A stretch of DNA of 64,000 bases, from assembly GCA_052426225.1 (NCBI GenBank), contig JBNJNM010000006.1:62001-126000 (forward strand). Direction: 5' to 3'. Each line of letters starts with the position of its first letter. The stretch's first letter is position 1. This DNA comes from Zancudomyces culisetae HAW-14-8. Its lineage: Eukaryota > Fungi > Kickxellomycota. The notes under the pieces were generated by a model. That model ran no database searches and was not told the DNA's origin. It saw only the letters and a program-made list of their open reading frames with translations. Shown here piece after piece: positions 4,060 through 64,000 of this stretch. The position numbers were made by a program, and so were the translations under genes.

Positions 4060-4142
4060 GACTTTATTAATTCATTTTGTTTTGATTAAACGATTTTGTT
4101 AAATTTTCATGATATAAAAAAAAATAATAAAATAAAAAGACC

Positions 4143-8814: not shown

Positions 8815-8925
8815 TTCAATAAATAAACGACCAAATAGATCATTCACAGTCTTTTATTCATTACTCACTTTTCACTATTCCCTTCCATCCATCTTGGTTT
8901 TTCTTTCTTGCTCAACCTCACTAGC

Positions 8926-9966
8926 TCACCACTTCATTAGTTGATCCTCAATTTCTAGCATCTCGGCCTCACCTATTTCACCTTCACTTTCACTTTCACT
9001 TTCGCTTTCTCCATTAGTGGTTGGGCATTTATTTTCATGTATTTTTGTTGAGTTCTCCATCTTCTCTTTTTCTTCCTGTTCAATAGCCACATTCAACTCC
9101 ACCAAATGACCAACTATTTCTCTCAGTTCTTTCAATTTACTCGCTTTGGCCTCCCAGATTTGCTGCTCGGTCTCCATTTGCTCTTTTATTGTTAATTTAC
9201 TTTCCCGTTCCTGTTGTTCCCACTCATCCTTATCGATAGCTTTTCCAAGTTCTATCGCCTCCTCGATAGTCGTGAATTCTTTTTCCCTTTCCTTCCCGTT
9301 TTCACTTTGAATATCTTCACCTTTACTTTCTTTTTCAATTTCTTGTTGCAATCTTTGCAGTTTCTGATCGAGTTCAATCTCTTCCAAACTTGGTAAATGT
9401 CCCAAAATATCTGTATCTTGTTCGTTACTTTCATCTCCATTTTTCACTTCGCGATCCTTGTCGATTTTACTGGGCTCCGTAATATTTGAATCAAAGAATC
9501 TAGATGGCAAAGCATTGTCGTCGTTTATTCCCTGCTCAGTACCATTTTCTCCCATTTCTTCAAGCTCATCAGCATAGTTTTTTTTGACATGCATATCACT
9601 AACAGGATGACTTTGATCGTGCATGTCCTTGTTTGCATGTTTTGGTTTTTTAGCTCTTTCTCCACCATGAGCAATGTGCTCTTTTTTTCGCTTTTTGTCT
9701 AAATTCTTTGCATCTTGATCCCCCTCTCCTTGTCCCCTCTTACTGTTTTCATTTCTTAAATTATTTACACTAACTATATTTGCTGCATCTCTTTGTTTAC
9801 CATTACCCTGCTCGTTCCCACCAATTATTCGAGATTGATCATTTCTTGATTTCAATTTAGCATCAGCAGGCCCATACTTTTGTTTAATGTTTTTCCCTTC
9901 AATAGCTTTGCTGCCCCTTTGTAGCCTTGCTTTGTGAAGCAGGTGTCGCACATTGTTAGGATCCAT
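8926..9966 (-). CDS. Charged coiled-coil protein, possibly ZNF830/CCDC16-like spliceosome-associated factor
   Basis: 346-aa ORF. N-terminal VRHLLHKAR helix, LPSRFFD (cf. LPEGFFD of ZNF830), acidic coiled coil and terminal W; no zinc finger visible. The ORF is credible but the family call is tentative. Confidence 0.45.
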   Translation of the reverse strand: MDPNNVRHLLHKARLQRGSKAIEGKNIKQKYGPADAKLKSRNDQSRIIGGNEQGNGKQRDAANIVSVNNLRNENSKRGQGEGDQDAKNLDKKRKKEHIAHGGERAKKPKHANKDMHDQSHPVSDMHVKKNYADELEEMGENGTEQGINDDNALPSRFFDSNITEPSKIDKDREVKNGDESNEQDTDILGHLPSLEEIELDQKLQRLQQEIEKESKGEDIQSENGKEREKEFTTIEEAIELGKAIDKDEWEQQERESKLTIKEQMETEQQIWEAKASKLKELREIVGHLVELNVAIEQEEKEKMENSTKIHENKCPTTNGESESESESEGEIGEAEMLEIEDQLMKW

Positions 9967-15976: not shown

Positions 15977-18900
15977 CTAGTGGGCCTCATCAGAATCTAG
16001 AACTGGAGTAATAGACAGACTCTCTTGCTGCTCACAGTTAGAAATGCTTTCACATGAAAAAGTAGGGTTGAAGACTCCGGCGGTGCCCTTAAATGGTGCC
16101 ATAGCTAGGGAAGTCATGCTAAAGTTGGAAATCTTGTATGATGCCTTAAGCGAGTTGTTGACAAAGACTTGAAGTTGAGAATCTTTGTAAACAATCTTGA
16201 TATCTTGCAAGTTTGCTCTTGTGAAAAGGTTGCTTCGTTTAACCAAAGCGTATTTACCCTTCTTGATGGAACTGATACCAGATGACAAACCAAATTGAGC
16301 TTCAACTACACCGTTAGGACTGTAGAACCCGCTGTCGTCCATGAGTGCAACAAAGAAGTCTGAGCTAGCAGAGATACTAGCAGTGAACTCAAAGTCGCTT
16401 GTATCACATGGAATTGTAAGAGCGTGCGTGAAGTCGTAGTCTTTGTTCTTTTTAGTAGATGATATAACAATGTTAGGACCAACAGAGGTTGAATCACAAG
16501 TAGATGAGCTTGAGCTAGTAGATGTAGTTGAGCTGGTTGATGTTGAGCTAGTTGAAGTGCTTGTTGGTGAGGTGCTGGTTGTTGGGGATGTTGAGCTGGT
16601 TGTTGGGGATGTTGAGCTGGTTGTTGGGGATGTTGAGGTTGATGTTGAGCTGGTTGTTGATGTTGTTGGTGAGGTGCTAGTTGTTGGTGAAGTTGAGGTT
16701 GATGTTGAGCTGGTTGATGTTGAGCTAGTTGTTGGTGAAGTTGAGGTGCTTGTTGGTGAGGTGCTGGTTGTTGGGGATGTTGAGCTGGTTGTTGGTGAAG
16801 TTGAGGTTGATGTTGAGCTGGTTGATGTTGTTGAGCTGGTTGATGTTGAGCTAGTTGAAGTGCTTGTTGGTGAGGTGCTGGTTGTTGGGGATGTTGAGGT
16901 TGGGGATGTTGAGCTGGTTGTTGAGCTGGTTGAAGTGCTTGTTGGTGAGGTGCTAGTTGTTGGGGATGTTGAGCTGGTTGTTGGTGAGGTGCTAGTTGTT
17001 GGGGATGTTGAGGTTGATGTCGAGCTGGTTGATGTTGTTGAGCTGGTTGATGTTGAGCTAGTTGAAGTGCTTGTTGGTGAGGTGCTAGTTGTTGGGGATG
17101 TTGAGCTGGTTGTTGGGGATGTTGAGGTTGATGTTGTTGAGCTGGTTGTTGGTGAGGTGCTTGATGTTGAAGTTAGAGTTGAGGTGCTTGTTGATGTTGA
17201 GGTTGATGTTGAGGTTACGGTTGAGGTGCTTGTTGAGCTGGTTGAAGTGCTTGTTGGTGAGGTGCTTGTTGAGGATGTTGTTGGTGAAGTTGTTGGAGAT
17301 GTTGAGCTGGTTGTTGGATTTGGACAGTTGGTGTCATTACAGTTGTACTCTGCATTTTCAATTGATGTTGAATCCTTCTCAGCACCAAATGCAAGCCATG
17401 CACTTGGTGAGTTTTTGAATGTATTAACATCGTAATCACTTGGAGAAAGTGTCAAAATTGGTGTGCTGCCTCCTACCAATCCAATGCTAATTCCTGAACT
17501 GTTAATTCGAATATATACTTTTTCAGAATTTGCTGCTCCTGACATAACAGTTTGATCCTTGGAATAAACTGAAGATCCAATATACCATACTCCAGTGTTT
17601 ACACCAATTACACCTTCAATAACCTCGCTGTCAGTAAACAGTGATTTCTCAGTACTAATCGCAAAGTAGATATCTGAAGTTTGATCAATGTCGAATGTAA
17701 CAAGATAGTCTTGTGCTGGACAAGTAACGTCAATAGCACTGTCCCAGCTGTAATTGATAACTGAACTATCACCAGATCCCTGAGAAATTGGAATAATACT
17801 GATAGATTCAGAACAGTTAACACTCTCAGAACTAGTCGATGAGGTTGAGGTGCTAGTTGTTGGGGATGTTGTTGGTGAGGTTGAGCTGGTTGAAGTGCTT
17901 GTTGGTGAAGTTGTTGGTGAGGTGCTAGTTGTTGGTGATGTTGTTGATGAGGTTGAGCTAGTTGAAGTGCTTGTTGGTGAGGTGCTAGTTGTTGGGGATG
18001 TTGATGTTGAGCTGGTTGTTGGTGAGGTTGAGCTAGTTGAGGTGCTTGTTGGGGATGTTGAGGTTGATGTTAGGGATGTTGAGCTGGTTGTTGATGTTGT
18101 TGAGCTAGTTGTTGGGGATGTTGAGCTGGTTGTTGGTGAAGTTGTTGGTGAGGTGCTAGTTGTTGGGGATGTTGTTGGTGATGTAGTTGAGGATGTTGAG
18201 CTGGTTGAGGTGCTTGTTGGTGAGGTGCTGGTTGTTGGTGATGTTGAGCTGGTTGTTGGGGATGTTGAGCTAGTTGTTGGTGATGTTGTTGATGAGGTTG
18301 AGCTGGTTGAAGTGCTTGTTGGTGAGGTGCTAGTTGTTGGGGATGTTGAGCTGGTTGTTGGGGATGTTGAGGTTGATGTTGTTGAGCTGGTTGTTGGTGA
18401 GGTGCTTGATGTTGAAGTTAGAGTTGAGGTGCTTGTTGATGTTGAGGTTGATGTTGAGGTTACGGTTGAGGTGCTTGTTGAGCTGGTTGAAGTGCTTGTT
18501 GGTGAGGTGCTTGTTGAGGATGTTGTTGGGGGTGTTGAGGTGCTTGTTGGTGAAGTTGTTGGAGATGTTGAGCTGGTTGTTGGATTTGGACAGTTGGTGT
18601 CATTACAGTTGTACTCTGCATTTTCAATTGATGTTGAATCCTTCTCAGCACCAAATGCAAGCCATGCACTTGGTGAGTTTTTGAATGTATTAACATCGTA
18701 ATCACTTGGAGAAAGTGTCAAAATTGGTGTGCTGCCTCCTACCAATCCAATGCTAATTCCTGAACTGTTAATTCGAATATATACTTTTTCAGAATTTGCT
18801 GCTCCTGACATAACAGTTTGATCCTTGGAATAAACTGAAGATCCAATATACCATACTCCAGTGTTTACACCAATTACACCTTCAATAACCTCGCTGTCAG

Positions 18901-21900
18901 TAAACAGTGATTTCTCAGTACTAATCGCAAAGTAGATATCTGAAGTTTGACCAATGTCGAATGTAACAAGATAGTCTTGTGCTGGACAAGTAACGTCAAT
19001 AGCACTGTCCCAGCTGTAATTGATAACTGAACTATCACCAGATCCCTGAGAAATTGGAATAATACTGATAGATTCAGAACAGTTAACACTCTCAGAACTA
19101 GTCGATGAGGTTGAGGTTGAGGTGCTAGTTGTTGGGGATGTAGTTGGTGATGTTGTTGGTGAGGTTGAGCTGGTGCTTGATGAAGTTGAGCTGGTTGAAG
19201 TGCTTGTTGGTGAAGTTGTTGGTGAGGTGCTAGTTGTTGGGGATGTTGATGTTGAGCTGGTTGTTGGTGAGGTTGAGCTAGTTGAGGTGCTTGTTGGTGA
19301 TGTTGTTGGTGAGGTGCTAGTTGTTGGGGATGTAGTTGGGGATGTAGTTGGTGATGTAGTTGGTGATGTTGTTGGTGATGTTGAGCTGGTTGTTGGTGAG
19401 GTTGAGCTGGTTGTTGGTGAGGTTGAGCTGGTGCTTGATGAAGTTGAGCTGGTTGAAGTGCTTGTTGGTGAAGTTGTTGGTGAGGTGCTAGTTGTTGGGG
19501 ATGTTGATGTTGAGCTGGTTGTTGGTGAGGTTGAGCTAGTTGAGGTGCTTGTTGGTGAGGTGCTAGTTGTTGGGGATGTTGTTGGTGATGTAGTTGAGGA
19601 TGTTGAGCTGGTTGAGCTGGTTGTTGGTGAGGTTGAGCTGGTTGAGGTGCTTGTTGGTGAGGTTGTTGGTGATGTTGTTGGGGATGTTGAGCTGGTTGAG
19701 GTGCTTGTTGGTGAGGTTGTTGGTGATGTTGTTGGGGATGTTGAGCTGGTTGAGGTGCTTGTTGGTGAAGTTGAGCTGGTTGATGTTGTTGGGGATGTTG
19801 AGCTGGTTGAAGTGCTTGTTGGTGAAGTTGTTGGTGAGGTGCTAGTTGTTGGTGAGGTGCTAGTTGTTGGTGATGTAGTTGGGGATGTTGAGCTTGTTGG
19901 TGATGTAGTTGAGGATGTTGAGCTGGTTGTTGGGGATGTTGTTGGTGAGGTGCTGGTTGTTGGGGATGTTGATGTTGAGCTGGTTGTTGGTGAAGTTGTT
20001 GGTGAGGTGCTAGTTGTTGGGGATGTTGTTGGTGATGTAGTTGGTGGTGTTGAGCTGGTTGATGTTGTTGGTGATGTTGTTGGTGATGTTGATGTTGAGC
20101 TGGTGCTTGATGAGGTTGAGCTGGTTGATGTAATTGGACACTTTTCTGAATCGTTACATGTGTATTGAATATTTTCTATGATGGCTGAATCATTCTCGGC
20201 TCCAAATGCAAACCACACATCATTTACATTTGCAAATGCTTGAGCGTTATAGTTTGCTATCGGAAGTTCCAATATTACATCACCACTGCTTTTCAATCCA
20301 ATCTGTATCCCTGCACTATTAACCTTCACGTATGCTGTCTGTGTTCCTGCTGGAGCCTTGGCAACTGATTTGTCTACAGTGTAAAGTGATGTTCCAATAT
20401 ACCAATAGCCAGTGTTAACACCTATAGCACCTTGGATTACTGTATCATTATCAACCAATGTTTTTGTAGTAGAAATAGTAAAATATATGTCCGATGTCTG
20501 ATCGATATCAAATGTTACTTGATAGTCTTGCTTTGGACAAACAACATCGATAGCACTATCCCAGTCATAATTTACAATTGCGCTACTTCCTGAGCCTTGG
20601 TCAATTACGAGTTCGCTTATTGAAAGAGAACAGCTTGGTTCTACGGAAGATGAAGTGCTGGATGTTGTGGTTGATGTGGTTGTGGTTGATGTTGAGCTGG
20701 TTGTTGGGGATGTTGTTGGTGATGTAGTTGGGGATGTTGAGCTGGTTGGTGATGTTGAGCTAGTTGTTGGTGAGGTGCTAGTTGTTGGGGATGTTGATGT
20801 TGAGCTGGTTGTTGGTGAGGTTGATGTTGAGCTGGTTGTTGGTGATGTAGTTGGGGATGTTGAGCTGGTTGTTGGTGATGTTGATGATGTACTTGAGGAT
20901 GTTGAGCTAGTTGTTGATGAGGTGCTAGTTGTTGGTGATGTTGTTGGTGATGTTGAGCTGGTTGTTGGTGATGTTGAGCTGGTTGGTGATGTTGAGCTGG
21001 TTGTTGATGATGTTGATGATGTACTTGAGGATGTTGAGCTAGTTGTTGATGAAGTACTTGATGAGGTGCTTGGTGTAAAATCACACTCACTATCATCACA
21101 ATTTGGACCTGAACATCCATCTACATGTTGTGAGATAAATTCGTCCCAGTAATAGGACATCATCATATAAATAGCAACGGTGTTTGCAGAGTCACAAACC
21201 TTTCCGTTGACTGAAACGATTGAACTTACAATACCCACAAGTTTTTTGTAATCAAGCCCAGTCATTGGACCTCCCGAGTCACCCAAACATACGGATTTTC
21301 CTGTTGTAATGCCAGCACAGAATATTTTTCCATCAGCGTTATCGCTTCCAAGCATTCTGTCGCAATAGTCTTGTCTTCCTTGAATGACTTGAAGTTCATT
21401 TAGGACCGAGAGAGTACTATTTTCGTTTGAGGTATATCCAAATCCACTTACTGTATATGTTCCGGTTCTGTCGATGGGTGTTGTGTCGATTTCGATAGGT
21501 TCAGCCACATCAGGGCTTACACACTCGTCAAGGAACAACAGAGCAAGATCGTCCCTATATGGATCTTCATTGACATATTTGGGGTGGATTATAACATTCT
21601 TTACTGAGTAAATGTTGTCATTGTATGGAATAGGTTGAACACTTCCCACCCCGATTTGGATATTGTCCCACTGAATCTCGTCAACTGTGTTTGATTCGTA
21701 AAGACAATGCGCTGCAGTAAGAACCACGTTTGGTCTTATCAATTGACCTGTGCATCTATAGGAACTATCTTCAACGCTTTTGAAATACGCAATGTATTTG
21801 TAATTCTCGAGGTCGGCGTTCTCGCCACCTATGATTCTATCGCCAATGGATCTCTTTGAAAGCCTATTTGGAGTTTGGCTAAACAACCCAGCCTCAGGAG

Positions 21901-21973
21901 CACTAGTTGCACTACTTGGGCATAAGTTTGAAAGAACCAGGCCTAATATCGAAAGTCCTGATCTCGTTTTCAT
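15977..21973 (-). CDS. Giant (~2000 aa) secreted S1 serine protease with four mucin-like Ser/Thr/Pro tracts, three ~170-aa repeated domains and one C-terminal domain
   Basis: First ATG at 21973. Signal peptide, KRSIGDR|IIGG, triad TAAHC / DLALL / GDSGGP. Uninterrupted ORF through ~3.5 kb of repeats; no transmembrane or GPI-type hydrophobic tail. Confidence 0.9.
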   Translation of the reverse strand: MKTRSGLSILGLVLSNLCPSSATSAPEAGLFSQTPNRLSKRSIGDRIIGGENADLENYKYIAYFKSVEDSSYRCTGQLIRPNVVLTAAHCLYESNTVDEIQWDNIQIGVGSVQPIPYNDNIYSVKNVIIHPKYVNEDPYRDDLALLFLDECVSPDVAEPIEIDTTPIDRTGTYTVSGFGYTSNENSTLSVLNELQVIQGRQDYCDRMLGSDNADGKIFCAGITTGKSVCLGDSGGPMTGLDYKKLVGIVSSIVSVNGKVCDSANTVAIYMMMSYYWDEFISQHVDGCSGPNCDDSECDFTPSTSSSTSSTTSSTSSSTSSTSSTTSSTSPTSSTSPTTSSTSPTTSPTTSTSSTTSSTSSSTSSTSPTTSSTSPTTSPTTSSTSTSPTTSSTSTSPTTSTSPTTSSTSPTSSTSPTTSPTTSPTTSSTSTTTTSTTTSSTSSSVEPSCSLSISELVIDQGSGSSAIVNYDWDSAIDVVCPKQDYQVTFDIDQTSDIYFTISTTKTLVDNDTVIQGAIGVNTGYWYIGTSLYTVDKSVAKAPAGTQTAYVKVNSAGIQIGLKSSGDVILELPIANYNAQAFANVNDVWFAFGAENDSAIIENIQYTCNDSEKCPITSTSSTSSSTSSTSTSPTTSPTTSTSSTPPTTSPTTSPTTSTSPTTSPTTSSTSTSPTTSTSPTTSPTTSSTSSTTSPTSSTSPTTSPTTSTSPTTSTSPTTSPTSTSTSSTSPTTSTSSTSPTSTSTSSTSPTTSPTTSPTSTSTSSTSPTTSPTTSPTSTSTSSTSPTTSSTSSTSSTTSPTTSPTTSTSPTSTSTSSTSPTTSSTSTSPTTSTSPTTSPTSTSTSSTSSSTSSTSPTTSSTSPTTSSTSPTTSPTTSPTTSPTTSPTTSTSPTTSPTSTSTSSTSPTTSSTSTSPTTSTSPTTSPTSTSTSSTSSSTSSTSPTTSPTTSPTTSTSTSTSSTSSESVNCSESISIIPISQGSGDSSVINYSWDSAIDVTCPAQDYLVTFDIGQTSDIYFAISTEKSLFTDSEVIEGVIGVNTGVWYIGSSVYSKDQTVMSGAANSEKVYIRINSSGISIGLVGGSTPILTLSPSDYDVNTFKNSPSAWLAFGAEKDSTSIENAEYNCNDTNCPNPTTSSTSPTTSPTSTSTPPTTSSTSTSPTSTSTSSTSTSTVTSTSTSTSTSTSTLTSTSSTSPTTSSTTSTSTSPTTSSTSPTTSTSPTSTSTSSTSSTTSPTTSSTSPTTSSTSPTTSTSPTSTSTSSTSSTTSPTTSPTTSTSPTTSPTTSSTSPTTSSTTSTTSSTSLTSTSTSPTSTSTSSTSPTTSSTSTSPTTSTSPTSTSTSSTSSTTSPTTSTSPTTSPTSTSTSSTSPTTSPTTSTSTSSTSSESVNCSESISIIPISQGSGDSSVINYSWDSAIDVTCPAQDYLVTFDIDQTSDIYFAISTEKSLFTDSEVIEGVIGVNTGVWYIGSSVYSKDQTVMSGAANSEKVYIRINSSGISIGLVGGSTPILTLSPSDYDVNTFKNSPSAWLAFGAEKDSTSIENAEYNCNDTNCPNPTTSSTSPTTSPTTSSTSTSPTSTSTSSTSTSTVTSTSTSTSTSTSTLTSTSSTSPTTSSTTSTSTSPTTSSTSPTTSTSPTSTSTSSTSTSSTTSTSSTSTSTSPTTSTSPTTSSTSPTTSTSPTSTSTSSTTSSTSPTSTSPTTSTSPTSTSTSSTSTSSTTSTSSTSTSTSPTTSSTSPTTSTSPTSTSTSPTTSSTSTSSTSTSTSPTTSTSPTTSTTSSTSTSTSPTTSSTSPTTSSTSPTTSTSPTSTSTSSTSTSSTTSTSSSSSTCDSTSVGPNIVISSTKKNKDYDFTHALTIPCDTSDFEFTASISASSDFFVALMDDSGFYSPNGVVEAQFGLSSGISSIKKGKYALVKRSNLFTRANLQDIKIVYKDSQLQVFVNNSLKASYKISNFSMTSLAMAPFKGTAGVFNPTFSCESISNCEQQESLSITPVLDSDEAH
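16500..21075 (-). repeat. Coding minisatellite tracts encoding (T/S)TSPT-type mucin repeats: about 16500-17310, 17830-18580, 19100-20130, 20645-21075
   Basis: Shuffled 12-21 nt units such as gttgagctggttgttggggat and gaggtgctagttgttggt on the plus strand. Confidence 0.95.
17065..19110. repeat. Near-identical intragenic direct duplication, about 17065-17850 versus 18310-19110
   Basis: Offset 1266 bp over the globular domain and 1245 bp past a 21-bp indel. The only amino-acid difference I see in the domain is FDIGQ versus FDIDQ. Confidence 0.92.
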
Positions 21974-23019
21974 ATTCAATTCTCTAAAGTGTTTTTTTTT
22001 TTTACTTTTCTTCTATAATTCACTTTTGATAACTGAATTTAATGTTATTATTTGAAAAGATGATTCTATAAAAAGTATGTGAATGCTAGTTTAAAGTTGT
22101 TGATATATTAAAACAACTCTTTAAATGGTTTGAGCTTTAATGATGTTTTTTTTTTTCCGTTGTGTTTTAGATTCCACCTTTTATATAGAATTTTTTGGTT
22201 TTTGATTTTGCTTTCAAACCTTTCTCCTCCTCTCCTTTTTTTTTCTACTCCTTTCCTTTCCTCCTCTCTCTATTCTTTCATCCTCTCTCTAACCTTGAAC
22301 ATTACAAAAAAAAATTAAAAATTAAAACTATTATTAGAATCAACTAATAAGTATTCTAATGCTAGAAGCAAGTTTAGGTAATTTACAGCAGATAAAAACA
22401 TACTTTGGCCAATAGCTAGTATTACTATGTATTTTTAGAAACTTTTTTGTATTTTAGTTTTCACAAACAAATATCCATCAAATTAGTAATTAATCGAAAT
22501 GTATAAACTTTTTTTTTGAGGATTTAGATTTGCAATGCTTTATTAATAAATCCCGAGGTTGTGGAAATGATAACAGGTGATATTGATAGTCAAACTAGTC
22601 GGATACCGCTCTATGCCATTATATTGACTACAGCTATTGACTTGGTTCTCCCGTATTTATTTGGACTTTAATGTTCCATTGACATTTCAATTCCTCATTT
22701 ATTTAATAAATCGTGTAATATATCTATAGTATTTATTACTATCATTATAACCAACTAAATACCCGTTTTATACATTTCCTACTATATGGAAACATCAATT
22801 AATATGCTACTCCGTATGTAGCCATTGCCTTTAATTCCCTTTTTCGCCTTTTTACCAAATTTTTGCCAATTTTACATCACTTATAACCCTTTTAACTTTA
22901 AAAATATAATATATAATGGTACTAAGAGGCTGGTAATAGCTGTACTTTAGCAGTAATAGCTACCAAAATTCCCTAGTCTCAAAATTAAATTCTATTCAAT
23001 TTCAACGACTTTTTTTGTA

Positions 23020-55390: not shown

Positions 55391-55393
55391 TTG

Positions 55394-55466
55394 CGATCAC
55401 GGTGGGACTCGAACCCACAATCTTCAGATCCGAAGTCTGACGCCTTATCCATTAGGCCACGCGACC
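55394..55466 (-). tRNA. tRNA-Arg(UCG), 73 nt, intronless
   Basis: GGTCGCGTGGCCTAATGGATAAGGCGTCAGACTTCGGATCTGAAGATTGTGGGTTCGAGTCCCACCGTGATCG: full cloverleaf, A box TGGCCTAATGG, B box GGTTCGAGTCC, anticodon loop CTTCGGA. Confidence 0.97.
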
Positions 55467-55474
55467 ATATTTTT

Positions 55475-55789
55475 TGTCAGATACTAACGTTTTTATGCTA
55501 GTATCTCTTATATTTAATACTACTATGCTAAATATAAAACTATGTTATTCTATTTTTAAATATTACTATGTTTTATTTCAGACCTAAGTTGTATATCTTT
55601 TTTCCTAAATTAACTATTTATTGTGTAACATTTATAAAAAACTAACTAAAAAACTCTTATATAAGATACTACTAAAAAATTATATTTAAAAACGAAAATG
55701 TTATTAGAAAAAATCACTAGGATAAAAAAAACTAATGCATTTCGGATTCGTAACCAGTTACGAATCAATTGTCAATTTGCTATATGACA
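55475..55789 (-). repeat. 3' LTR of element 1
   Basis: TGTCAGATA...TATATGACA; direct repeat of 60333-60647. Confidence 0.96.
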
Positions 55790-55790
55790 G

Positions 55791-55802
55791 CTCCCCCCTT
55801 TT
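55791..55802 (-). other. Polypurine tract of element 1 (AAAAGGGGGGAG)
   Basis: 1 nt from the 3' LTR, overlapping the pol stop codon. Confidence 0.9.
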
Positions 55803-58800
55803 AAGCGCGGATGCCCTCATTCCGCCGGGACTGCTTAAATCGCTTCAACTTAGTCTTCAGTGTCGTTGTTACATCCGGAATCATATAGTTGCTGGTGTGG
55901 TACTTCTTAAGCATATCTCCATGAGCTAATTCTCTGTTACCTTCTTGATCACTTATAACATACGCACCCTTGCTTAAAGCTCTTTCAACCGTGTAGGGGC
56001 CTTCCCAATAATGTTCGAGTTTTGACCTCTCCATGTCTACCAACTTAAGAACCTTCTCACCTACCTCAAACCTATGGTACGTGACACCCTTGTTATACCT
56101 TGTTGCCTGTGAACTTTTGGCTTCGATAGAACTCTTATGAGCCAGATTTCTCAACACAGGTAAGTCGTCATTTATCTGTTTCACCCTGCTTAAAATCAAT
56201 TCCTCTACGTTTTCAATTTCTCCATTGTACTTCCATGTAGTGGGTAGTGAAAGCTCAACGCCATACAGCATCTCCGCCGGACTGTATCCAATCGATTTAT
56301 TTCTCAAAGTTCGTATTACCAGTAGAGTTTTCCATAGGTAGGCATCCCACTTCTGTTTATCATTCCGACATTGCTTAATCAATACATTCATGAGAGTTTG
56401 GTTCAGTCGTTCCGTCTGACCATTACTCTGAGGCCTGTACGAGGTCGTGGGAGTGTGGTGTATACCCAACCACTCGTACACTTGAGTCGCACATTCAGAT
56501 AGGAAGCTGGACCCACGGTCACTAATCAGTTGTTGAGGTACTCCAAATGGTGCTATGACCTCATTTATAAGGAAATTTATTACGGTGTTACTTTGTATAT
56601 TGGGTACAGCTAATGCAATAGGCCATTTCGTGAACAGGTCTATAGCCGTCAAGATGAACCTGTTTCCACTAGCGGAAATCGGTGCTATTGGCCCGATTGC
56701 GTCAATTCCGACTATCTGGAAAGGTTTCGTCGTAACTATTGGAACCAGTGGATGCCTTTTACTTTTACTACCCTTGTATAATTGGCATACCGGGCAACAC
56801 TTTACGATTTCCTTGACCTCTCTATATATATTCCTACTGGTATACCTCTGTGATACACGCAACCAGGTGTTTTCTATGCCTTCGTGCCCTTCGTTGTGTA
56901 TTGACTCAACTACTTGGCGGATATTTCCTCGATGCAAAACCTCTTTCAAACATCCTTTTACTTCTTTCATTAGTTTACCCTTATCGATTTTATATAGTTT
57001 AGATCTTCTCTTTAGCCTTTCTTTGTACTCCACATCTATATTGTCTGGTAACTTCTTTTCCGTAAGGTACTGTTTTATATCTTCGTATTCTAAAATTTCC
57101 ATGGCAAACACGTCGAGCTCTACATCATCCTGTTCATTCTCATTCTCAGTAACTAGTCGAGACAGAGCATCGGCTGGGTTGATAATTCCGGGTAAATGCT
57201 CTATGGTATAATCAAAACTACGTAGGACCATAGCCCAGCGTGCAACACGACCTGTTATATCTGGGCTATTGAACAATTGGATTAACGACTTGTGGTCGGT
57301 TCTGATTCTGAACTTTCTACCCCATACGTAGAATTTGAACTTTTTAACTGACCAAACCACGGCCAAGCCTTCCAAATGGCTTATGGAGTAGTTTTTTTCT
57401 GCTGGAGTGGTGGTTCGGCTTGCATACTCTATTATTTTCTCACCTTCGCTGGTAATCTGAGATAACACACCTCCTATTCCTATTGCTGATGCGTCCGTGG
57501 TGATCACAAACTCGACGGTCCAGTCTGGATGACCTAATACCGGTGCAGAAGACATCAATACCTTCAATTGTCTAAGCGCATCTTCCTGTTCGTCACCCCA
57601 TTCCCATTTTACAGACTTCTTCAGTAGTTGCGTTAAGGGACTGGTGACCCGAGAATAGTTAGGAATATATTTCCTGTAATATCCAGTCATCCCTAATGCC
57701 GATTGCAATTCCTTAACGCACGTCGGAGCCTTTATATTGTTTATAGCTTCCACTTTCTTTGGGCTGGTTCCTATCCCCTTGGCGGATATTGTGTGCCCTA
57801 GATATTCGAGTTCTGTAAATCCTATAACGCATTTATCCCGGTGGAGCTGTATTTGATTCTTTTCTAATAATGCTAAAACCTTATCCAAATCTTCCGCATG
57901 CTTATTGATTTCTTTCGAGAAGACGATAATATCGTCCACAAAAACTACGGCACACTTCCATAACAGAGGTTGTAGTACTTTTTCCATTGCGCGTTGGAAC
58001 GTCGCCGGACTATTCGTTAGTCCAAACGGCATGACGTTATATTCAAAAGCGCCACTCCCTGGGATGGCAAAGGCTGTTTTTGCTTTGTCGGCGCTATGCA
58101 TACGGATCTGCCAAAATCCGCTCATGGCGTCAAGGCAGCTAAACACAACCGCGCCAGACAAAGCCATGAACAGATCTGCGATAACAGGGAGCGGATAACT
58201 ATCCTTTCTTGTCACCTCATTGAGCCTCCGGTAGTCGGCGCAGACGCGTATCTTTCCGTTTTTCTTATGGACTATCACCACTGGAGCGCACCATTCAGAA
58301 GTTGTCGGTGAAATAATTCCCTGTTTTTCCATTTCCTTTAATTCATGCAATACCTGCTCTTGCTGCCTATGCGGTATCCGGTAAGGCCTGAGCTTGATAG
58401 GTGTCTCATCTTTTACCTGGATACGATGTTCTATCACGCTAGTTTGAGTGAGCTCGGAAAGGTCGCTAACAAAGATGTTGTTATACTTATGGATTACACT
58501 TTCAAGCTCCACCTCCAGGCACGATCCTCTTCCTACTGGTCCTTGCTTTAAGATAGCGTACAGTTCAGCTTTTTCATCTTCCATGTTCAAATCTGCGGAT
58601 GTTTCTAGCCTTGTAACTACTTCCACGTTTTCGATTGGTATCCTTAGTTCAGGTACTTTAAGATTCAACGAAGCCTTATGTTGTAGTAACCAATCGGTTC
58701 CTAGGATAAGAGTATCGTCATTTCTGGACATAACGATCAGATTTACTGGTAATATGAAGCTTGCAATCATTAACGGCACCTGCGACAACCTTCCTAGGGT

Positions 58801-60237
58801 GTTATGCCTCTTCCCATCCGCCGTCACTAATGTTAGCCCACTTTTACTATCCATGTCCAATCCCCAACCCTCCATTAGGTTGTAAGTAACAACGGAGCAA
58901 GCCGCCCCTGTATCCACCACTGCCCACAATTTTTGTCCGAATACTTGCACCATTATTCTGCAATTAGATGTTTTTCTTTCTTGAACTTGTATTTCGTTTA
59001 GTTCCATAACCTTGTCCTTTTTGAGGAAGCTCTTCAACTCTTCTGAGTATATTGGGGCATTCTCAATTAACTGTAAAGCATCAATTTTTGGGTAGACCTT
59101 GCGCAACTCTTCGATAATGGAGAAGGTCTTGTTGGTGCCTTTCAACAGCTGGTAGTTTTTACCTCTTGAAATGTTTGATTCTAGCCTATTCTCATCTCCC
59201 AGCGATTCATCCCCAACTTCCGCTGTCGGATGGGCCACACCACTGGTCTCTTCCGGTGTAGAGTGGACTCCCCTAGTGCGTGCGGTCCTGTACTTAGTAG
59301 GGCGTTGTTCTGTTGCTCCACTGGCTATGTCACTGTGCTTTCTTTTATCAATTGCATACACCTGTGCATCGTCTTCCACTGCACTATGGTTCTCAATTAC
59401 CTCAATATAATTTATGTTCTTTTGAATGTCTACCTTGCTACCATCGCTTGAACCGCTTTCTTTTATCTTCGGACACTCATACTTACGATGGCCTATTTCA
59501 TTACACGAATAACATTTTACCACAAAGGGCTGTACTCTTCTATTACTTGTAGCCGCTTCCTTAAGTTTTTGATCAACTACTTGCTCTACTTTTGTGATCA
59601 GACTCACACTCATTTCCTCGAATCTTTTCATCATGTCACTGTACGCTACTGAGTTTTTTGCAATTTCCTTAACACTTTTCCCTTTTGATGCAGCGTTCGT
59701 GGTATAATCCTTCGCTTGAACTTTAGAATCCTTGTGATCCCCTTTCTTTGGATTTACCACTGAGCCATCCTCAACCTTTGTGATTAATTCAATTACCTTA
59801 TCCCACTCAGTTATGCTGTTTTCTTCAACTTTCTCTTTAAATTCTACTCTAAGTGTACTAACTAAAAAATCGAATCTGTTCCCAATATCTTTGATGTTAG
59901 CTTTATTTAGTAAATGATTCAACTCCACTTCAAGTTCTTCTATACTATCAAATTCAGACTGTTTAATCGATCGCAACCGATTCCAAATTTTTTCCTTTGA
60001 ATCTGTAGTACCATATTTTTCTTTGAATCTTTTGCTTAATTCCTCCCAGCTGGTAAATTTTACTTTGTTCTTCTTGAACCATATCTTTTCCTTGTTCCCT
60101 AAAAATAACTTCACAAGGTCAATAAGGTCATCTTCCGGCCAACTATTCAACTTTGCGACCAGTTTGAAGTCCTCAATCCACTCTGCTGGATCTATCCCTT
60201 TTCCAGATTCAAATTGCTTTGGTGATGTTATAACCAT
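55801..60237 (-). CDS. Single-ORF Gag-Pol polyprotein (capsid, CCHC knuckle, protease, RT, RNase H, integrase with GPY/F motif, no chromodomain)
   Basis: CYSCNEIGHRKYEC; VDTGAACS; DYRRLN, MPFGLTNSPATFQ, FVDD; TDAS..GIGGVL; HHCC finger, SDRGSSF, PQSNGQTER; WEGPY. Order PR-RT-RH-IN is Ty3/gypsy. Confidence 0.96.
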   Translation of the reverse strand: MVITSPKQFESGKGIDPAEWIEDFKLVAKLNSWPEDDLIDLVKLFLGNKEKIWFKKNKVKFTSWEELSKRFKEKYGTTDSKEKIWNRLRSIKQSEFDSIEELEVELNHLLNKANIKDIGNRFDFLVSTLRVEFKEKVEENSITEWDKVIELITKVEDGSVVNPKKGDHKDSKVQAKDYTTNAASKGKSVKEIAKNSVAYSDMMKRFEEMSVSLITKVEQVVDQKLKEAATSNRRVQPFVVKCYSCNEIGHRKYECPKIKESGSSDGSKVDIQKNINYIEVIENHSAVEDDAQVYAIDKRKHSDIASGATEQRPTKYRTARTRGVHSTPEETSGVAHPTAEVGDESLGDENRLESNISRGKNYQLLKGTNKTFSIIEELRKVYPKIDALQLIENAPIYSEELKSFLKKDKVMELNEIQVQERKTSNCRIMVQVFGQKLWAVVDTGAACSVVTYNLMEGWGLDMDSKSGLTLVTADGKRHNTLGRLSQVPLMIASFILPVNLIVMSRNDDTLILGTDWLLQHKASLNLKVPELRIPIENVEVVTRLETSADLNMEDEKAELYAILKQGPVGRGSCLEVELESVIHKYNNIFVSDLSELTQTSVIEHRIQVKDETPIKLRPYRIPHRQQEQVLHELKEMEKQGIISPTTSEWCAPVVIVHKKNGKIRVCADYRRLNEVTRKDSYPLPVIADLFMALSGAVVFSCLDAMSGFWQIRMHSADKAKTAFAIPGSGAFEYNVMPFGLTNSPATFQRAMEKVLQPLLWKCAVVFVDDIIVFSKEINKHAEDLDKVLALLEKNQIQLHRDKCVIGFTELEYLGHTISAKGIGTSPKKVEAINNIKAPTCVKELQSALGMTGYYRKYIPNYSRVTSPLTQLLKKSVKWEWGDEQEDALRQLKVLMSSAPVLGHPDWTVEFVITTDASAIGIGGVLSQITSEGEKIIEYASRTTTPAEKNYSISHLEGLAVVWSVKKFKFYVWGRKFRIRTDHKSLIQLFNSPDITGRVARWAMVLRSFDYTIEHLPGIINPADALSRLVTENENEQDDVELDVFAMEILEYEDIKQYLTEKKLPDNIDVEYKERLKRRSKLYKIDKGKLMKEVKGCLKEVLHRGNIRQVVESIHNEGHEGIENTWLRVSQRYTSRNIYREVKEIVKCCPVCQLYKGSKSKRHPLVPIVTTKPFQIVGIDAIGPIAPISASGNRFILTAIDLFTKWPIALAVPNIQSNTVINFLINEVIAPFGVPQQLISDRGSSFLSECATQVYEWLGIHHTPTTSYRPQSNGQTERLNQTLMNVLIKQCRNDKQKWDAYLWKTLLVIRTLRNKSIGYSPAEMLYGVELSLPTTWKYNGEIENVEELILSRVKQINDDLPVLRNLAHKSSIEAKSSQATRYNKGVTYHRFEVGEKVLKLVDMERSKLEHYWEGPYTVERALSKGAYVISDQEGNRELAHGDMLKKYHTSNYMIPDVTTTLKTKLKRFKQSRRNEGIRA

Positions 60238-60313
60238 TTTCTTTATCTCTCTATAATAGAATTATTATTTCCTAGTCGAATCCTTAAATGAAAATAATCT
60301 GAAGGACTTATAG

Positions 60314-60331
60314 GTCCCACCGTGATCGCCA
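60314..60331 (-). other. Primer-binding site TGGCGATCACGGTGGGAC, complementary to tRNA-Arg(UCG)
   Basis: 1 nt inside the 5' LTR; 18/18 complement to the last 15 nt of the 55394-55466 tRNA plus CCA. Confidence 0.96.
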
Positions 60332-60332
60332 C

Positions 60333-60647
60333 TGTCAGATACTAACGTTTTTATGCTAGTATCTCTTATATTTAATACTACTATGCTAAATATAAAACTA
60401 TGTTATTCTATTTTTAAATATTACTATGTTTTATTTCAGACCTAAGTTGTATATCTTTTTTCCTAAATTAACTATTTATTGTGTAACATTTATAAAAAAC
60501 TAACTAAAAAACTCTTATATAAGATACTACTAAAAAATTATATTTAAAAACGAAAATGTTATTAGAAAAAATCACTAGGATAAAAAAAACTAATGCATTT
60601 CGGATTCGTAACCAGTTACGAATCAATTGTCAATTTGCTATATGACA
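60333..60647 (-). repeat. 5' LTR of element 1
   Basis: Direct repeat of 55475-55789. Confidence 0.96.
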
Positions 60648-60770
60648 TTTTGTTATATTTTATTTCTAAAATATATGTATTTACTATAATTGTTCTATAA
60701 TATTTCTTTAAGTTATTGTTATTAACTATAACAAGGTAATTATATTTTTTAACTGATTATTTCTTTATTT

Positions 60771-63700
60771 TGTCAAATATTTCCCTTTTTTATACTTTTT
60801 TTCTTTCTAAGTAAAAATTAATTTAAACTAAGATACTGAAACTAAACTTCTTTAATACTAAAACAATAAATTACTATTAAAAATTATATGACTAAACAAA
60901 CGTTTGTATTGCGACACTATGAGTCATCAGAAAAAACTAGATGACGTTATTTTCATCGATAGTGAAAAAAACTGATCCTCATTAGTTATCGCAAACTAAT
61001 AATTTGTTCGTTTGCATGATGACTAATTAATTAGTCATCATGCTCTCCTGCCCACTATATGACAGTACCCCCTCCCCTAAGCAAAGATGCCCTCATCGCG
61101 TGCTCTTTGTCGGAACCTTTTTAGCTTGGACTTTAATGTGGTAGTCACCTCCGGAATCATATGGCTACTCATGTGGTACTGTTTGAGTATGTCTCCGTGT
61201 ACTAGGTCCCGATTACCGTACTTGTCACTGATGATGTACGTGCCCTTATCTAGCTTATTCTGAATTGTATAGGGTCCCTCCCAGACTCTTTCTAACTTGG
61301 CCCTTTCGTACTCAATCAGCTTCAAGACTAAATCTCCTACTTTAAAGCTGTATTCCACAACCTTCCGATTATAGATATTTTCATCATACCTTTTGGCTCT
61401 CGCTGAGTTCTGGTTTCCTAGTTGCCGAAGGATTGGCAATTCGCCCTTTATGCTTTTAATCCTGTTCTGCACTTGCTCTTCCTCATTGTCAATTTCCCCA
61501 TTATAATTCCAAGTTGAAGGCAGTTCTAGCTGTACCCCATACAACATTTCAGCCGGGCTGAATCCCGTAGATTTGTTCTTCATGGTGCGAAGTACTAGTA
61601 AGGTCTTCCACATGTGTCTATGCCAGTTGACTTTGTCGTTTCGGCATTGCTTCTGTAAAATGTTAATCAAAGTGCGATTCAACCTCTCTACCTGTCCGTT
61701 ACTCTGGGGACGGTAGGGTGTTGTTGGTGCGTGTCGGGTTCCTAGCCACTCGTAAACCTCTGTTGTTACTTCGCTGACAAATCCTGCGCCTCTGTCAGTG
61801 ATAATTCTTTGCGGAATCCCAAACTCCTTAACAATGTGTGATATAATAAAGTCTACCACGGTATCACTCTGTATATTTGTCACTGGTACAGCTATAGGCC
61901 ATTTTGTGCAATAATCAATCGCTGTCAAAATAAACCTATTCCCGGATTCCGACCCCGGACTTATTGGTCCTATAGCATCAATACCGACAATCTCGAATGG
62001 TTTCTGAACCTTGATGGGTACCAAAGGATGCTTCTTAGTTCTTCCGTCTTTATACAGCTGACAGGTATGGCAGCTTTGAACTATCTCGTATACATCTTTG
62101 TAAAGTTCTGTTCCGCAATATCTGGCACTGACCCGCTTCCAGGTATTCTCTATACCTTCATGAGACTCTTCGTGAATTTTATTGATTATTTCCTTATAAT
62201 TTCGCTCGTGAAGCACCTCTTTCAGAATCTTTTTAACTCTCTTAAATAGCTTTCCTTCTATTAATCTGTACTGCCTGGATTTATTCCTCAAGCGTTTTCG
62301 AAAATTCTCGTCACTATTCCTAGGATAGGATAGGTCCGCCAAGTACTGTCTTACCGCCTCATGTTCTAGGTATCCCATTGCACACACGTCCAATTCTTCC
62401 GGTTTGTCCTCTGTGCTTTCCGTAACCAATCTTGACAGTCCGTCAGCAGGATTAAATTTTCCCGGTAAGTGTTCTATTTCAAAATCATAGTTCCTTAGCA
62501 CCATCGCCCATCTGGCGATTCTCCCGGAGATATCAGGCCCATGGAATATCTGTATCAGGGACTTGTGATCTGTACGAATACGGAATTTCCTGCCCCAAAC
62601 GTAATACTTGTACTTCTTCACCGCCCATACTACAGCCAGCGCTTCTAGATGGCTTATACTGTAATTCTTCTCTGCCTTATTGGTTGTCCTACTTGCAAAC
62701 TCGATCACTCTTTCCGAACCTTTTTCACCTTGCGAAAGTACGGCTCCAATCCCTAGCATAGATGCATCCGTAGTGATGACAAATTCCTGTTCCCAATCCG
62801 GATGGCCCAGTACTGGTGCAGTCGTTAGTAATGTCTTTAGCTGTGTTACTGCCCCGGCTTGCTCTTCGGTCCACCTCCACTTTTCGTCTTTCTTGAGTAA
62901 CCTGGTTAGTGGGTTTGCTATCCGTGCATAGTTTGGAATGTACTTTCTATAGTACCCCGTCAATCCTAGGAGAGATTGTACTTCCTTTATATTTGTTGGT
63001 TCTTTGACTGTCTGTATCGCTGATATTTTCTTCGGACTCGTGCCAATACCTTTATCTGAGACCACGTGCCCCAAGTAATCTATTTCTTTTTGACCTATGG
63101 CACATTTGTTACGGTGTAGCTGGATCTTGTTCTTCCTCAACAAGTTAAATACCAGTTCCAGATCCTTTGCGTGTTCGTCCACTTCTTTTGAAAACACTAT
63201 GATGTCGTCTATAAAGACGACGGCCTTTTTCCACAACACCGGTTTTAATATCTGCTCCATAGTCCTTTGGAACGTTGCTGGACTATTCGTTAGCCCAAAG
63301 GGCATAACGTTGTATCTAAAGCTACCACTCCCTGGAAGGGCAAAACTCGTCTTGTCCTTATCTGTTTCCCGCATTTTGATTTGCCAGAATCCACTTAGCG
63401 CGTCTAGGGAGCTAAAAATCACTGCCCCTGACAACGCCATAAATAGATCCTGGATAACGGGTAAAGGATACGAATCCTTTTTTGTAACTTTGTTGAGCTG
63501 TCGGTAATCTGCGCAAACTCGCAACTTACCATCCTTCTTGTGAACGATTACGACAGGCGAGCACCATTCGGCGTTGCTTGGTTCAATGATTCCTTTCTCT
63601 AACATTTCCTTTAACTGCTCTTCTACTTTCTCTTGTAACCTAAAGGGAATCCGATATGGCCGCTGACGAATGGGTTTGTCTACTTCTAGCTCAATCCTAT

Positions 63701-64000
63701 GTTCGGCTACGTCGGTCTGCTTCAAATCTGAAATATCCTCGACAAAAATGTCATCATATTCAGCTAGTACCTTCCTAGTATTCTCGTCTATGTAATCTTC
63801 CTTGCACTCGGGTCCTTCTTTCAAAATTAAATAGATTTCTGATTCTATTTCCTGAACTTCGTTGGATGTTACCAGTCTTGAAATTACTTCCGCATTCTCA
63901 ATGGGGAACCTTATTTCCGGTACGCGCAGGTTTATGGAAGCCCGGTGTTGTACCAACCAATCAGTACCTAGGATCAACGTACCTTCGTTTTTTGACATAA
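60771..64000 (-). mobile_element. Second, related Ty3/gypsy element (element 2): 3' LTR about 60771-61064, PPT 61068-61078, pol running off the window end
   Basis: TGTCAAATA...TATATGACA termini matching the style of element 1, PPT AGGGGAGGGGG and intact pol. The outer LTR boundary cannot be confirmed because the 5' LTR is outside the window. Confidence 0.9.
61077..64000 (-). CDS. Pol region of element 2 (protease C-terminus, RT, RNase H, integrase); 5'-partial
   Basis: LILGTDWL, DYRQLN, MPFGLTNSPATFQ, FIDD, TDAS, TDRGAGF, PQSNGQVER, WEGPY; colinear with element 1 and without stops. Confidence 0.95.
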   Translation of the reverse strand, partial: MSKNEGTLILGTDWLVQHRASINLRVPEIRFPIENAEVISRLVTSNEVQEIESEIYLILKEGPECKEDYIDENTRKVLAEYDDIFVEDISDLKQTDVAEHRIELEVDKPIRQRPYRIPFRLQEKVEEQLKEMLEKGIIEPSNAEWCSPVVIVHKKDGKLRVCADYRQLNKVTKKDSYPLPVIQDLFMALSGAVIFSSLDALSGFWQIKMRETDKDKTSFALPGSGSFRYNVMPFGLTNSPATFQRTMEQILKPVLWKKAVVFIDDIIVFSKEVDEHAKDLELVFNLLRKNKIQLHRNKCAIGQKEIDYLGHVVSDKGIGTSPKKISAIQTVKEPTNIKEVQSLLGLTGYYRKYIPNYARIANPLTRLLKKDEKWRWTEEQAGAVTQLKTLLTTAPVLGHPDWEQEFVITTDASMLGIGAVLSQGEKGSERVIEFASRTTNKAEKNYSISHLEALAVVWAVKKYKYYVWGRKFRIRTDHKSLIQIFHGPDISGRIARWAMVLRNYDFEIEHLPGKFNPADGLSRLVTESTEDKPEELDVCAMGYLEHEAVRQYLADLSYPRNSDENFRKRLRNKSRQYRLIEGKLFKRVKKILKEVLHERNYKEIINKIHEESHEGIENTWKRVSARYCGTELYKDVYEIVQSCHTCQLYKDGRTKKHPLVPIKVQKPFEIVGIDAIGPISPGSESGNRFILTAIDYCTKWPIAVPVTNIQSDTVVDFIISHIVKEFGIPQRIITDRGAGFVSEVTTEVYEWLGTRHAPTTPYRPQSNGQVERLNRTLINILQKQCRNDKVNWHRHMWKTLLVLRTMKNKSTGFSPAEMLYGVQLELPSTWNYNGEIDNEEEQVQNRIKSIKGELPILRQLGNQNSARAKRYDENIYNRKVVEYSFKVGDLVLKLIEYERAKLERVWEGPYTIQNKLDKGTYIISDKYGNRDLVHGDILKQYHMSSHMIPEVTTTLKSKLKRFRQRARDEGIFA

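Follow-up and report, generated by a model that had tools for sequence, protein, structure and literature searches.

A tRNA-Arg(UCG)-primed Ty3/gypsy retrotransposon of Zancudomyces culisetae that probably inserts just upstream of any tRNA gene

Element X of the fungus Zancudomyces culisetae is very probably a Ty3/gypsy retrotransposon that is primed by tRNA-Arg(UCG), targets any tRNA gene and forms stacks there, its position beside a gene for its own primer being coincidental. It was studied in a window of 64,000 nt, this being the whole stretch of DNA that was analysed (positions 62,001-126,000 of the forward strand of contig JBNJNM010000006.1, C6 below, in assembly GCA_052426225.1 of strain HAW-14-8). 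Coordinates given without a contig are those of the window, and all of the features described are on its minus strand. Z. culisetae is a mosquito-gut fungus of zygomycete grade.

All of the hallmarks of an LTR retrotransposon are present in X, these being TG...CA LTR ends, a primer binding site (PBS), a polypurine tract and a target-site duplication (TSD). The 3' LTR (55475..55789) and the 5' LTR (60333..60647) are 315 nt each, with the form TGTCA...TGACA, and are 100% identical (0 mismatches, 0 gaps). Between them is a single intact gag-pol ORF of 1478 aa (55801..60237), in which Pfam identifies Retrotrans_gag, zf-CCHC, aspartyl protease (PR, residues 429-517), RVT_1 (RT, 656-817), RNase H (880-1008), Integrase_H2C2 and rve domains (integrase, IN, 1105-1269). 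The order PR-RT-RNaseH-IN is that of Ty3/gypsy (Metaviridae) pol. The integrase is made up of a zinc-binding domain, a catalytic core and an SH3-like C-terminal domain, followed by a tail. The polypurine tract AAAAGGGGGGAG (55791..55802) overlaps the stop codon and adjoins the 3' LTR, and is unchanged across all of the full-length X copies. The PBS (60314..60331) is separated from the 5' LTR by one G, and is an 18/18 complement of positions 59-73 of tRNA-Arg(UCG) plus CCA. The TSD is AAAA at both ends of the element, the first A of the upstream copy (60648..60651) doubling as the last base of an older upstream LTR. TSDs of 4 bp are found at 9 X insertions, with ACAT, CATA, AATA, AAGA, CGAC, AAAT and AAAC among the other copies. 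The family is young, the two LTRs being identical in three copies and one base apart in a fourth. Judged from its sequence, the X copy in the window looks like an intact, recently active and replication-competent Ty3/gypsy LTR retrotransposon.

The gene next to it, for tRNA-Arg(UCG), has its mature part at 55394..55466 (ARAGORN, 55393-55466), with an intact cloverleaf and an Rfam tRNA score of 68.2 bits, and is followed by T-runs of the kind that terminate Pol III. ARAGORN finds this tRNA-Arg(tcg) as the sole tRNA in the whole window. It is identical to the primer tRNA of X. The 3' LTR is separated from base 1 of the tRNA by the 8-nt spacer AAAAATAT (55467..55474), the first four bases of which are the downstream TSD copy AAAA (55471-55474). 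Further Arg(UCG) genes are an identical copy at C23:356220 and a copy matching at 72/73 positions at C21:1526558. The possibility that the gene is a retro-copied primer carried by X was considered and rejected, given that it is full length, in sense orientation and has no encoded CCA (the genomic C at 55393 happens to correspond to the first base of CCA). The Pol III terminator, the unique host flanks and the presence of an identical gene elsewhere also count against that reading. A PBS that matches some tRNA is expected; the part that is open to chance is the identity of the neighbouring gene with the primer.

A census of X LTRs across the whole assembly found 26 LTR copies, representing 14 independent insertions. 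Three of the 14 directly adjoin a tRNA gene, all on the tRNA strand, at 8 nt (Arg-UCG), 6 nt (Ser-GCU) and 7 nt (Gly-CCC) upstream. A further five reach a co-oriented tRNA gene via a stack, defined as a case in which X is separated from the tRNA by nothing but co-oriented LTR elements, with the tRNA 5' end 6-9 nt from the nearest LTR end; the genes concerned are an Arg-UCG-like pseudogene, Gly-UCC, Ile-AAU, Val-AAC and Ala-UGC. Eight of the 14 insertions are in this way traced to a tRNA gene, and all eight are co-oriented with it, across seven isoacceptors. The other six comprise three in co-oriented stacks that extend beyond the DNA read and three without an assigned anchor; none of these six has a tRNA or other Rfam Pol III gene within 10 kb downstream, and an Rfam scan of 117 kb of downstream DNA for 5S, U6, SRP and RNase P genes gave nothing beyond the tRNAs already known. 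The same rule of position upstream of tRNA genes is obeyed by eight families. General targeting of Pol III start sites by X, as in Ty3 and Tj1, is well supported by these results. The original prediction had described an intact young Ty3/gypsy element with identical LTRs and an intact gag-pol, a PBS complementary at 18/18 positions to the tRNA-Arg(UCG) 3' end plus CCA, and a 3' LTR ending 8 nt before that gene on the same strand (55475 against 55466), all of which is confirmed; it had also proposed a tRNA-gene-targeting family, and this agrees with the eight traced insertions and with the fixed position a few bases upstream in the three direct cases, at 6-8 nt.

The window itself contains part of a stack. 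Upstream of X is an older, co-oriented, full-length Ty3/gypsy element, V, with its 3' LTR at 60651..61064 and the RT, RNase H and IN part of its pol at 61077..63998, in an ORF that continues past the window end. The partner LTR is beyond the window, at C6:127501-127927, and LTRs of family V occur at least 20 times in the genome. The V LTRs are 96% identical and those of X 100%. X has inserted between V and the tRNA-Arg gene, so that the order is V, X, tRNA and X is the youngest. Elsewhere, the elements that lie between X and the tRNA gene in stacks are younger LTR elements joined end-to-end: X copies with 5 to 11 LTR differences sit upstream of proximal elements whose LTRs are 99-100% identical. 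The genome around the window stack is compact and gene-dense.

These observations suggest the following mechanism. The X integrase would place the cDNA 6-9 nt upstream of the mature tRNA 5' end, in the orientation of the tRNA and with a 4-bp TSD, a spot that probably coincides with, or lies close to, the start of Pol III transcription. The target would be any tRNA gene, most likely recognised via the bound Pol III initiation machinery, and the integrase may contact TFIIIB/TFIIIC or Pol III, with its conserved C-terminal tail possibly acting in this contact. Every new insertion, of X or of several related families, would take the same spot and displace the older copies outward, giving stacks in which the tRNA gene is adjoined by the youngest element.

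Two explanations that dispense with tRNA-gene targeting need to be considered. X could insert broadly, with no integration specificity, the copies adjacent to tRNA genes being those that survive selection in a safe haven, and the compact, gene-dense surroundings, in which insertions elsewhere would often be harmful, fit such a view. However, retention by selection cannot explain the 6-9 nt window or the co-orientation of all eight traced insertions, nor why very young X copies, with identical LTRs, are already at the exact spot, and the occurrence of the same rule in eight families also counts against it; this explanation is very unlikely. Alternatively, the elements could target the ends of resident LTRs, giving end-to-end nesting in which the tRNA genes are incidental, as might be concluded from the presence of another LTR starting 2-7 nt after X in 11 of the 14 copies. 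Against this, the X copies at Ser-GCU and Gly-CCC directly abut the tRNA and are not flanked by any recognised LTR, and each traced stack terminates in a tRNA gene, again spaced by 6-9 nt, and has its youngest member closest to that gene. Repeated hits at one tRNA-defined site explain both the ends of the stacks and their age order, which targeting of LTR ends fails to do, and we regard the latter as very unlikely.

A different question is whether X, while targeting tRNA genes generally, favours those for tRNA-Arg(UCG), for example by the primer tRNA or nascent pre-tRNA tethering the preintegration complex at the locus. Arg(UCG)-type genes anchor two of the 14 insertions (C6:117394 and a degenerate copy at C21:1497939), and only four such genes exist among about 150-300 tRNA genes, giving a binomial tail of 0.05-0.015, which is nominal and not robust. 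The total was bracketed from counts of a B-box pattern against a reversed-pattern control (156 vs 26 and 367 vs 165), since only 63 candidates were scored in the Rfam tRNA search of the genome. The null of equal probability moreover overstates significance, because individual tDNAs differ more than 10-fold in how often Ty3 uses them, owing to their local flanks, and the test of an Arg(UCG) excess is post hoc. The other six traced anchors are six different isoacceptors, and no X is found at the two remaining Arg(UCG) genes, where LTRs from different families are positioned at 6-7 nt. The PBS of X also occurs in about seven more full-length elements (family Z and others), none of which has an Arg(UCG) gene downstream of it on its contig or strand, and pooling of the same-PBS elements gives 2/21 (P 0.03-0.11). 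Three proximal elements with another PBS (TGGCGCTCCCAGCTAGGC) adjoin non-matching Arg, Gly and Ala genes. At best there is a weak bias of X toward Arg(UCG)-type genes, which is not robust; a true preference is unlikely, and coincidence is the most likely reason for the own-primer anchor in the window. The preference for its own primer gene that had been suggested for X is not supported, the anchors being Arg-UCG (2), Ser-GCU, Gly-CCC, Gly-UCC, Ile-AAU, Val-AAC and Ala-UGC. The route suggested for it, insertion by homology between cDNA and PBS or by primer capture, fails on geometry: PBS homology predicts antisense insertion at the tRNA 3' end, of which no case was seen, whereas X lies in sense 8 nt upstream of the 5' end and has a duplicated target site.

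The identity of the primer can be read from one of the other X copies. In the copy on C13, the PBS is followed by 13 extra tRNA-Arg bases (positions 58-46), which replace the 9-nt leader stretch of X. These bases can only derive from copying of the tRNA itself, and this read-through, preserved within the genome, is rare proof of the identity of an element's primer. Its end point is ambiguous (tRNA positions 46 to 38), because the X leader contains an 8-nt box, CTTCAGAT, complementary to tRNA positions 38-45. The box was considered as a second primer contact, and this was rejected; family Z shares the PBS of X and lacks the box, which is taken to be chance or a relic.

The X integrase continues for only about 35 aa beyond the SH3-like domain, and a chromodomain is not detectable there, the only Pfam match at E<=10 being Integrase_p58_C. 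The canonical chromodomain that marks chromoviruses is likewise absent from the seven other stack-forming families; two nearby gypsy elements that do have a chromodomain are in the opposite orientation and show 28% identity. The last ~35 aa of X instead form a conserved tail, MIP(D/E)VT..LK.KLKRFK, which is common to all eight stack-forming families and is conserved at the protein level, with codon-position differences of 0.62 (third) vs 0.32 and 0.20 (first and second). A profile of the X tail gave no match to the Ty3 structure 7q5b. A word-based search for relatives of the tail found two Z. culisetae proteins only, and an exhaustive profile search found 435 proteins, many of them with the tail. 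The contigs that encode these relatives are from one fragmented assembly (GCA_001969505.1) or are too short to reveal a neighbouring tRNA, and a scan of the metagenome loci gave weak SH3 matches only. The missing chromodomain is consistent with a contact that differs from that of Ty3, and is no proof of it. A tentative proposal, which we consider possible rather than probable, is that the tail (MIPEV..LRS.LRRFR-like, the ~25-35 aa that follow the SH3-like domain) stands in for the chromodomain of Ty3 and chromoviruses and is a short, self-contained module by which the intasome docks on the Pol III initiation complex.

Among known systems, Ty3 of Saccharomyces cerevisiae is primed by initiator tRNA-Met and has a bipartite PBS. 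Its Gag-Pol, in the intasome-TFIIIB complex 7q5b, is the closest solved protein to X (E 2.8e-103, from RT to IN), and Ty3 integrates at Pol III transcription start sites, leaving the gene undisrupted, as X probably does. In Ty3, the SH3 domain is followed by a vestigial chromodomain (IN 446-511) that contacts Brf1 and the target DNA, whereas in X the SH3-like domain is followed by a different, conserved tail of ~35 aa and no chromodomain is detectable. Ty3 also has a 5-bp TSD, against 4 bp in X, and a +1 frameshift between gag and pol, where X has the single 1478-aa ORF.

Tj1 of Schizosaccharomyces japonicus (Guo, Singh and Levin 2015, PMC4600332) is similarly a Ty3/gypsy element of ~5 kb, and is found 5-11 bp upstream of the mature tRNA 5' end, invariably with the same orientation as its target, compared to 6-9 nt and co-oriented for X. 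It differs in that it is proposed to be self-primed, whereas X has an 18-nt tRNA-Arg(UCG) PBS, in its TSD of 5 bp rather than 4 bp, and in having a stop codon between gag and pol rather than one continuous ORF. DGLT-A of dictyostelids (Spaller et al. 2016, PMC5006619) resembles X in its single gag-pol ORF, the lack of a chromodomain, a TGG-type PBS right after the left LTR and a position upstream of tRNA genes. However, it lies 13-33 bp upstream in either orientation, whereas X has a tighter window and one orientation, and no matching primer tRNA was found for it, whereas that of X is identified. From their descriptions, Tyl6, Ylt1 and Tyl3 of Yarrowia lipolytica are also comparable, being Ty3/gypsy elements located ~5 bp upstream of tRNA transcription start sites.

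The targeting of tRNA genes is the textbook case of a retrotransposon safe harbour in a compact genome, and is known from budding yeasts, fission yeasts and social amoebae. X extends it, with single-base precision and strict orientation, to a zygomycete-grade gut fungus, and with equipment that differs from that of Ty3 in its 4-bp TSD, single ORF and tRNA-Arg primer, in lacking a chromodomain and in having a short conserved integrase tail. The coupling of primer supply to the landing site is an attractive idea that is not supported here. X is a further, independent-looking case in which to ask what component of the Pol III machinery is being recognised. If the proposal for the tail is true, then the tail would mark a clade of gypsy elements that target tRNA genes and occur both in early-diverging fungi and in metagenomic organisms that are not yet placed, and this clade would have reached the behaviour of Ty3 and Tj1 through a different protein contact.

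The only tRNA gene in the window, called by ARAGORN, is that for tRNA-Arg(UCG) on the minus strand (55394-55466), the call also taking in base 55393, a genomic C coinciding with the first C of CCA. Directly upstream on the same strand is element X, a 5,173-bp LTR element (55475-60647, minus) whose 3' LTR ends 8 nt (AAAAATAT) before base 1 of the tRNA, and which is bordered by AAAA at both ends. Its LTRs, of 315 nt each (TGTCA...TGACA), are identical. One G separates the 5' LTR from an 18-nt primer binding site (PBS; 60314-60331, minus) that is the exact reverse complement of tRNA-Arg(UCG) positions 59-73 plus CCA, and the polypurine tract AAAAGGGGGGAG adjoins the 3' LTR. A single ORF of 1478 aa (55801-60237, minus) encodes gag, a CCHC knuckle, protease, RT, RNase H and integrase in Ty3/gypsy order. 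The best solved relative of the protein is Ty3 Gag-Pol from the intasome-TFIIIB structure (E 2.8e-103), and a Zancudomyces culisetae database protein is 99% identical to its C-terminal part. The original prediction of a young element just upstream of the gene for its own primer was correct in every statement, covering the tRNA call, LTRs, PBS, ORF and 8-nt gap.

Instead of host DNA, the 429 nt preceding X (60648-61076) consist of the 3' LTR of V, a full-length co-oriented gypsy element; X is therefore flanked by this older element on one side and by the tRNA gene on the other. The pol ORF of V (61077-63998, minus) extends beyond the window end; at least 20 genomic copies of the V LTR exist, and the partner of this one, 96% identical to it, is at C6:127501-127927, on the same contig. 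The tRNA gene is followed downstream by a host gene that encodes a TOM13-like protein. Elsewhere in the window, the minus strand has a 2000-aa ORF (15977-21979) in a stretch of very strong GC skew, reaching 0.62, that also has several overlapping ORFs on the plus strand; the gene is probably repetitive or of low complexity.

The assembly (27.1 Mb, 25 contigs) contains 26 full copies of the X LTR. After LTR pairs were joined and two identical-flank duplications removed (a 21.9-kb repeat on contig C21 and a 2,379-bp tandem array on contig C12), these represent 14 independent insertions. The array (C12:1892002-1899451) is a tandem repeat whose unit includes a single X solo LTR; four such LTRs, flanked by identical sequence, recur at intervals of 2,379 bp. 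Seven of the 14 insertions are full-length, with LTR pairs differing at 0, 0, 0, 1, 5, 5 and 11 positions (mismatches plus gap columns), and the family has therefore been active very recently. Clean 4-bp target-site duplications flank nine insertions: AAAA (twice), ACAT, CATA, AATA, AAGA, CGAC, AAAT and AAAC.

Three insertions have a same-strand tRNA gene directly downstream: Arg-UCG at 8 nt, Ser-GCU at 6 nt and Gly-CCC at 7 nt. Five more lie in stacks, that is, co-oriented LTR elements arranged end to end upstream of an anchor tRNA gene; solely co-oriented solo LTRs or full-length elements intervene, and a co-oriented tRNA gene follows 6-9 nt past the last LTR. The anchors are Gly-UCC (6.2 kb from the X copy), Ile-AAU (2.4 kb), Val-AAC (1.8 kb), Ala-UGC (8.1 kb) and, with one intact element of another family, W, between (5.4 kb), a degenerate tRNA-Arg(UCG) copy of 68/73 identity, altered in the anticodon loop and at G18. 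A further three continue into co-oriented full-length elements extending beyond the 10 kb of downstream DNA examined, and at the remaining three another LTR begins after 2-5 nt, with no anchor in 10 kb downstream. An Rfam search of the downstream DNA examined found no Pol III gene besides the known tRNAs.

Wherever stack ages can be read, the element nearest the tRNA gene is the youngest. In the window, X, whose LTRs are 100% alike, has V, at 96%, on its upstream side. X copies whose LTRs differ at 5 and 11 positions have downstream of them, closer to the tRNA gene, elements with LTR identities of 99-100%. An order of this kind is expected if insertion recurs at one tRNA-defined point; neither insertion targeted to LTR ends nor random insertion with survival near tRNA genes predicts it. 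This order, together with the three direct and five stack-traced insertions out of 14 that reach co-oriented tRNA genes, supports the predicted targeting of tRNA genes by X. At least eight families obey the stack rule, at 41-67% protein identity to X.

Two gypsy elements with a canonical chromodomain stand beside stacks in the opposite orientation (reverse strand ~6842-9814 of the joined stretches L029 and L046; L037). They are about 28% identical to X, and are probably a second lineage with another targeting rule. At C21:1465461-1498011, a block consisting of a reverse-oriented LTR of family Z, X and W is present in two copies 21.9 kb apart, with a Z element in reverse orientation between them. 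The W copies there are 95.7% alike, one having a 3' LTR only 78% like its own 5' LTR; the doubled block and diverged LTRs point to recombination between elements of the stack.

It had also been proposed that X favours genes for its own primer, possibly through cDNA/PBS homology. Of the four Arg(UCG)-type genes in the genome, one is degenerate and the others are intact or almost intact; X is in the stack of two of the four. If all tRNA genes were used equally, the probability of at least two of 14 insertions at such genes is 0.05 to 0.015, for an assumed total of 150-300 tRNA genes that B-box counts only bracket. The genome has 156 matches to the pattern GGTTCGANTCC, compared with 26 to its reversed control, and 367 to the looser GGTTCRANYCC, compared with 165; many Rfam-found tRNA genes match neither. 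Many of the tRNA genes are paired head to tail, leaving a single start site per pair. In this genome tRNA genes often seem to be dicistronic: the head-to-tail pairs Ser(GCU)-Val(CAC) at C12:984241-984399 (L010 1336-1494) and Ala(UGC)-Lys(CUU) at C6:301209-301355 (L036 1711-1857) each have 2 nt between their members, and many B-box matches are spaced ~75 nt on one strand.

The Arg(UCG) excess is suggestive at most. The hypothesis was formed after one of the two cases was known, and equal use is too narrow a null, given that Ty3 uses some tRNA genes over ten times as often as others owing to their flanks. Moreover, the remaining two Arg(UCG) genes lack X and have LTRs from different families 6-7 nt away, and about seven more full-length elements with the same PBS (family Z and others) have no Arg(UCG) gene downstream; pooling gives 2/21, with P 0.03-0.11. 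Three proximal young elements of different families, sharing the PBS TGGCGCTCCCAGCTAGGC (L045 400-420; L032 1261-1285; L036 reverse strand 2441-2465), stand beside the Arg pseudogene, Gly-UCC and Ala-UGC, all three of which fail to match that PBS. A preference for the own primer gene is not supported, and a real bias of this kind is improbable. The homology mechanism is contradicted by its geometry: because the PBS is antisense to the tRNA, homology would give the opposite orientation at the tRNA 3' end, whereas X has the orientation of the tRNA gene and stops 8 nt short of the 5' end, and its target is duplicated.

That tRNA-Arg(UCG) is the primer actually used is shown by a rearranged X copy on contig C13 (C13:278700-284700, L047). 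Both its LTRs (reverse strand 90-525 and 5450-5845) carry an extension made up of the PBS, a 31-nt stretch of leader and the final 39 nt of the LTR; reverse transcription therefore began at a second, downstream PBS. Past the functional PBS, where X normally has 9 nt (CTATAAGTC), this copy has 13 nt of tRNA-Arg, positions 58 to 46, before the sequence returns to X at an 8-nt stretch common to both; it is these 13 extra bases that identify the primer. The normal PBS stops exactly before A58, and m1A58, a putative modification in this tRNA, is the usual stop for primer copying. To judge from this sequence, plus-strand synthesis evidently ran beyond position 58 of the primer, and aberrant reverse transcription left a product that became fixed in the genome as this copy. 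It also carries, within pol, a 413-nt MITE-like insert rich in short inverted repeats (reverse strand 4131-4544).

In Ty3 integrase, the SH3 domain touches TBP, and a vestigial chromodomain (IN 446-511) touches Brf1 and target DNA and sets position. The X integrase differs at its C-terminus: only about 35 residues follow its SH3-like domain, leaving no room for a Ty3-type chromodomain, and a Pfam scan of this tail gave no match even at E 10. The motif MIP(E/D)V(T/S)..L(K/R).KL(K/R)RF(K/R) is common to X and all seven other stack-forming families, and the tail is conserved at the protein level, with pairwise nucleotide differences of 0.62 at the third codon position, compared with 0.32 at the first and 0.20 at the second. 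An SH3-plus-tail profile did not match Ty3. Against a large protein library it matched 435 proteins, many with the same terminal motif; the long ones come from one fragmented assembly (GCA_001969505.1), and the others from metagenomic contigs too short to read a neighbourhood. The tail is a candidate targeting module, which would be comparable in kind to the short targeting domain that Ty1 integrase has.

A literature search found no paper on retrotransposon targeting in Harpellales. In insertion behaviour X is most like Tj1, which inserts 5-11 bp upstream of the mature tRNA 5' end and always co-oriented (PMC4600332), and it also resembles Ty3 and the Yarrowia elements. Compared with Ty3 and Tj1, X has a 4-bp target-site duplication, a single ORF, a PBS of the conventional kind, 18 nt long and matching a minor arginine tRNA, and no chromodomain. 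As had been proposed, its targeting may have arisen independently. DGLT-A likewise has no chromodomain, but X has a tighter insertion window and a fixed orientation (PMC5006619). X belongs to an already known kind of tRNA-gene-targeting element; two of its features deserve to be retained, the fossil of primer read-through and the conserved tail of the integrase.
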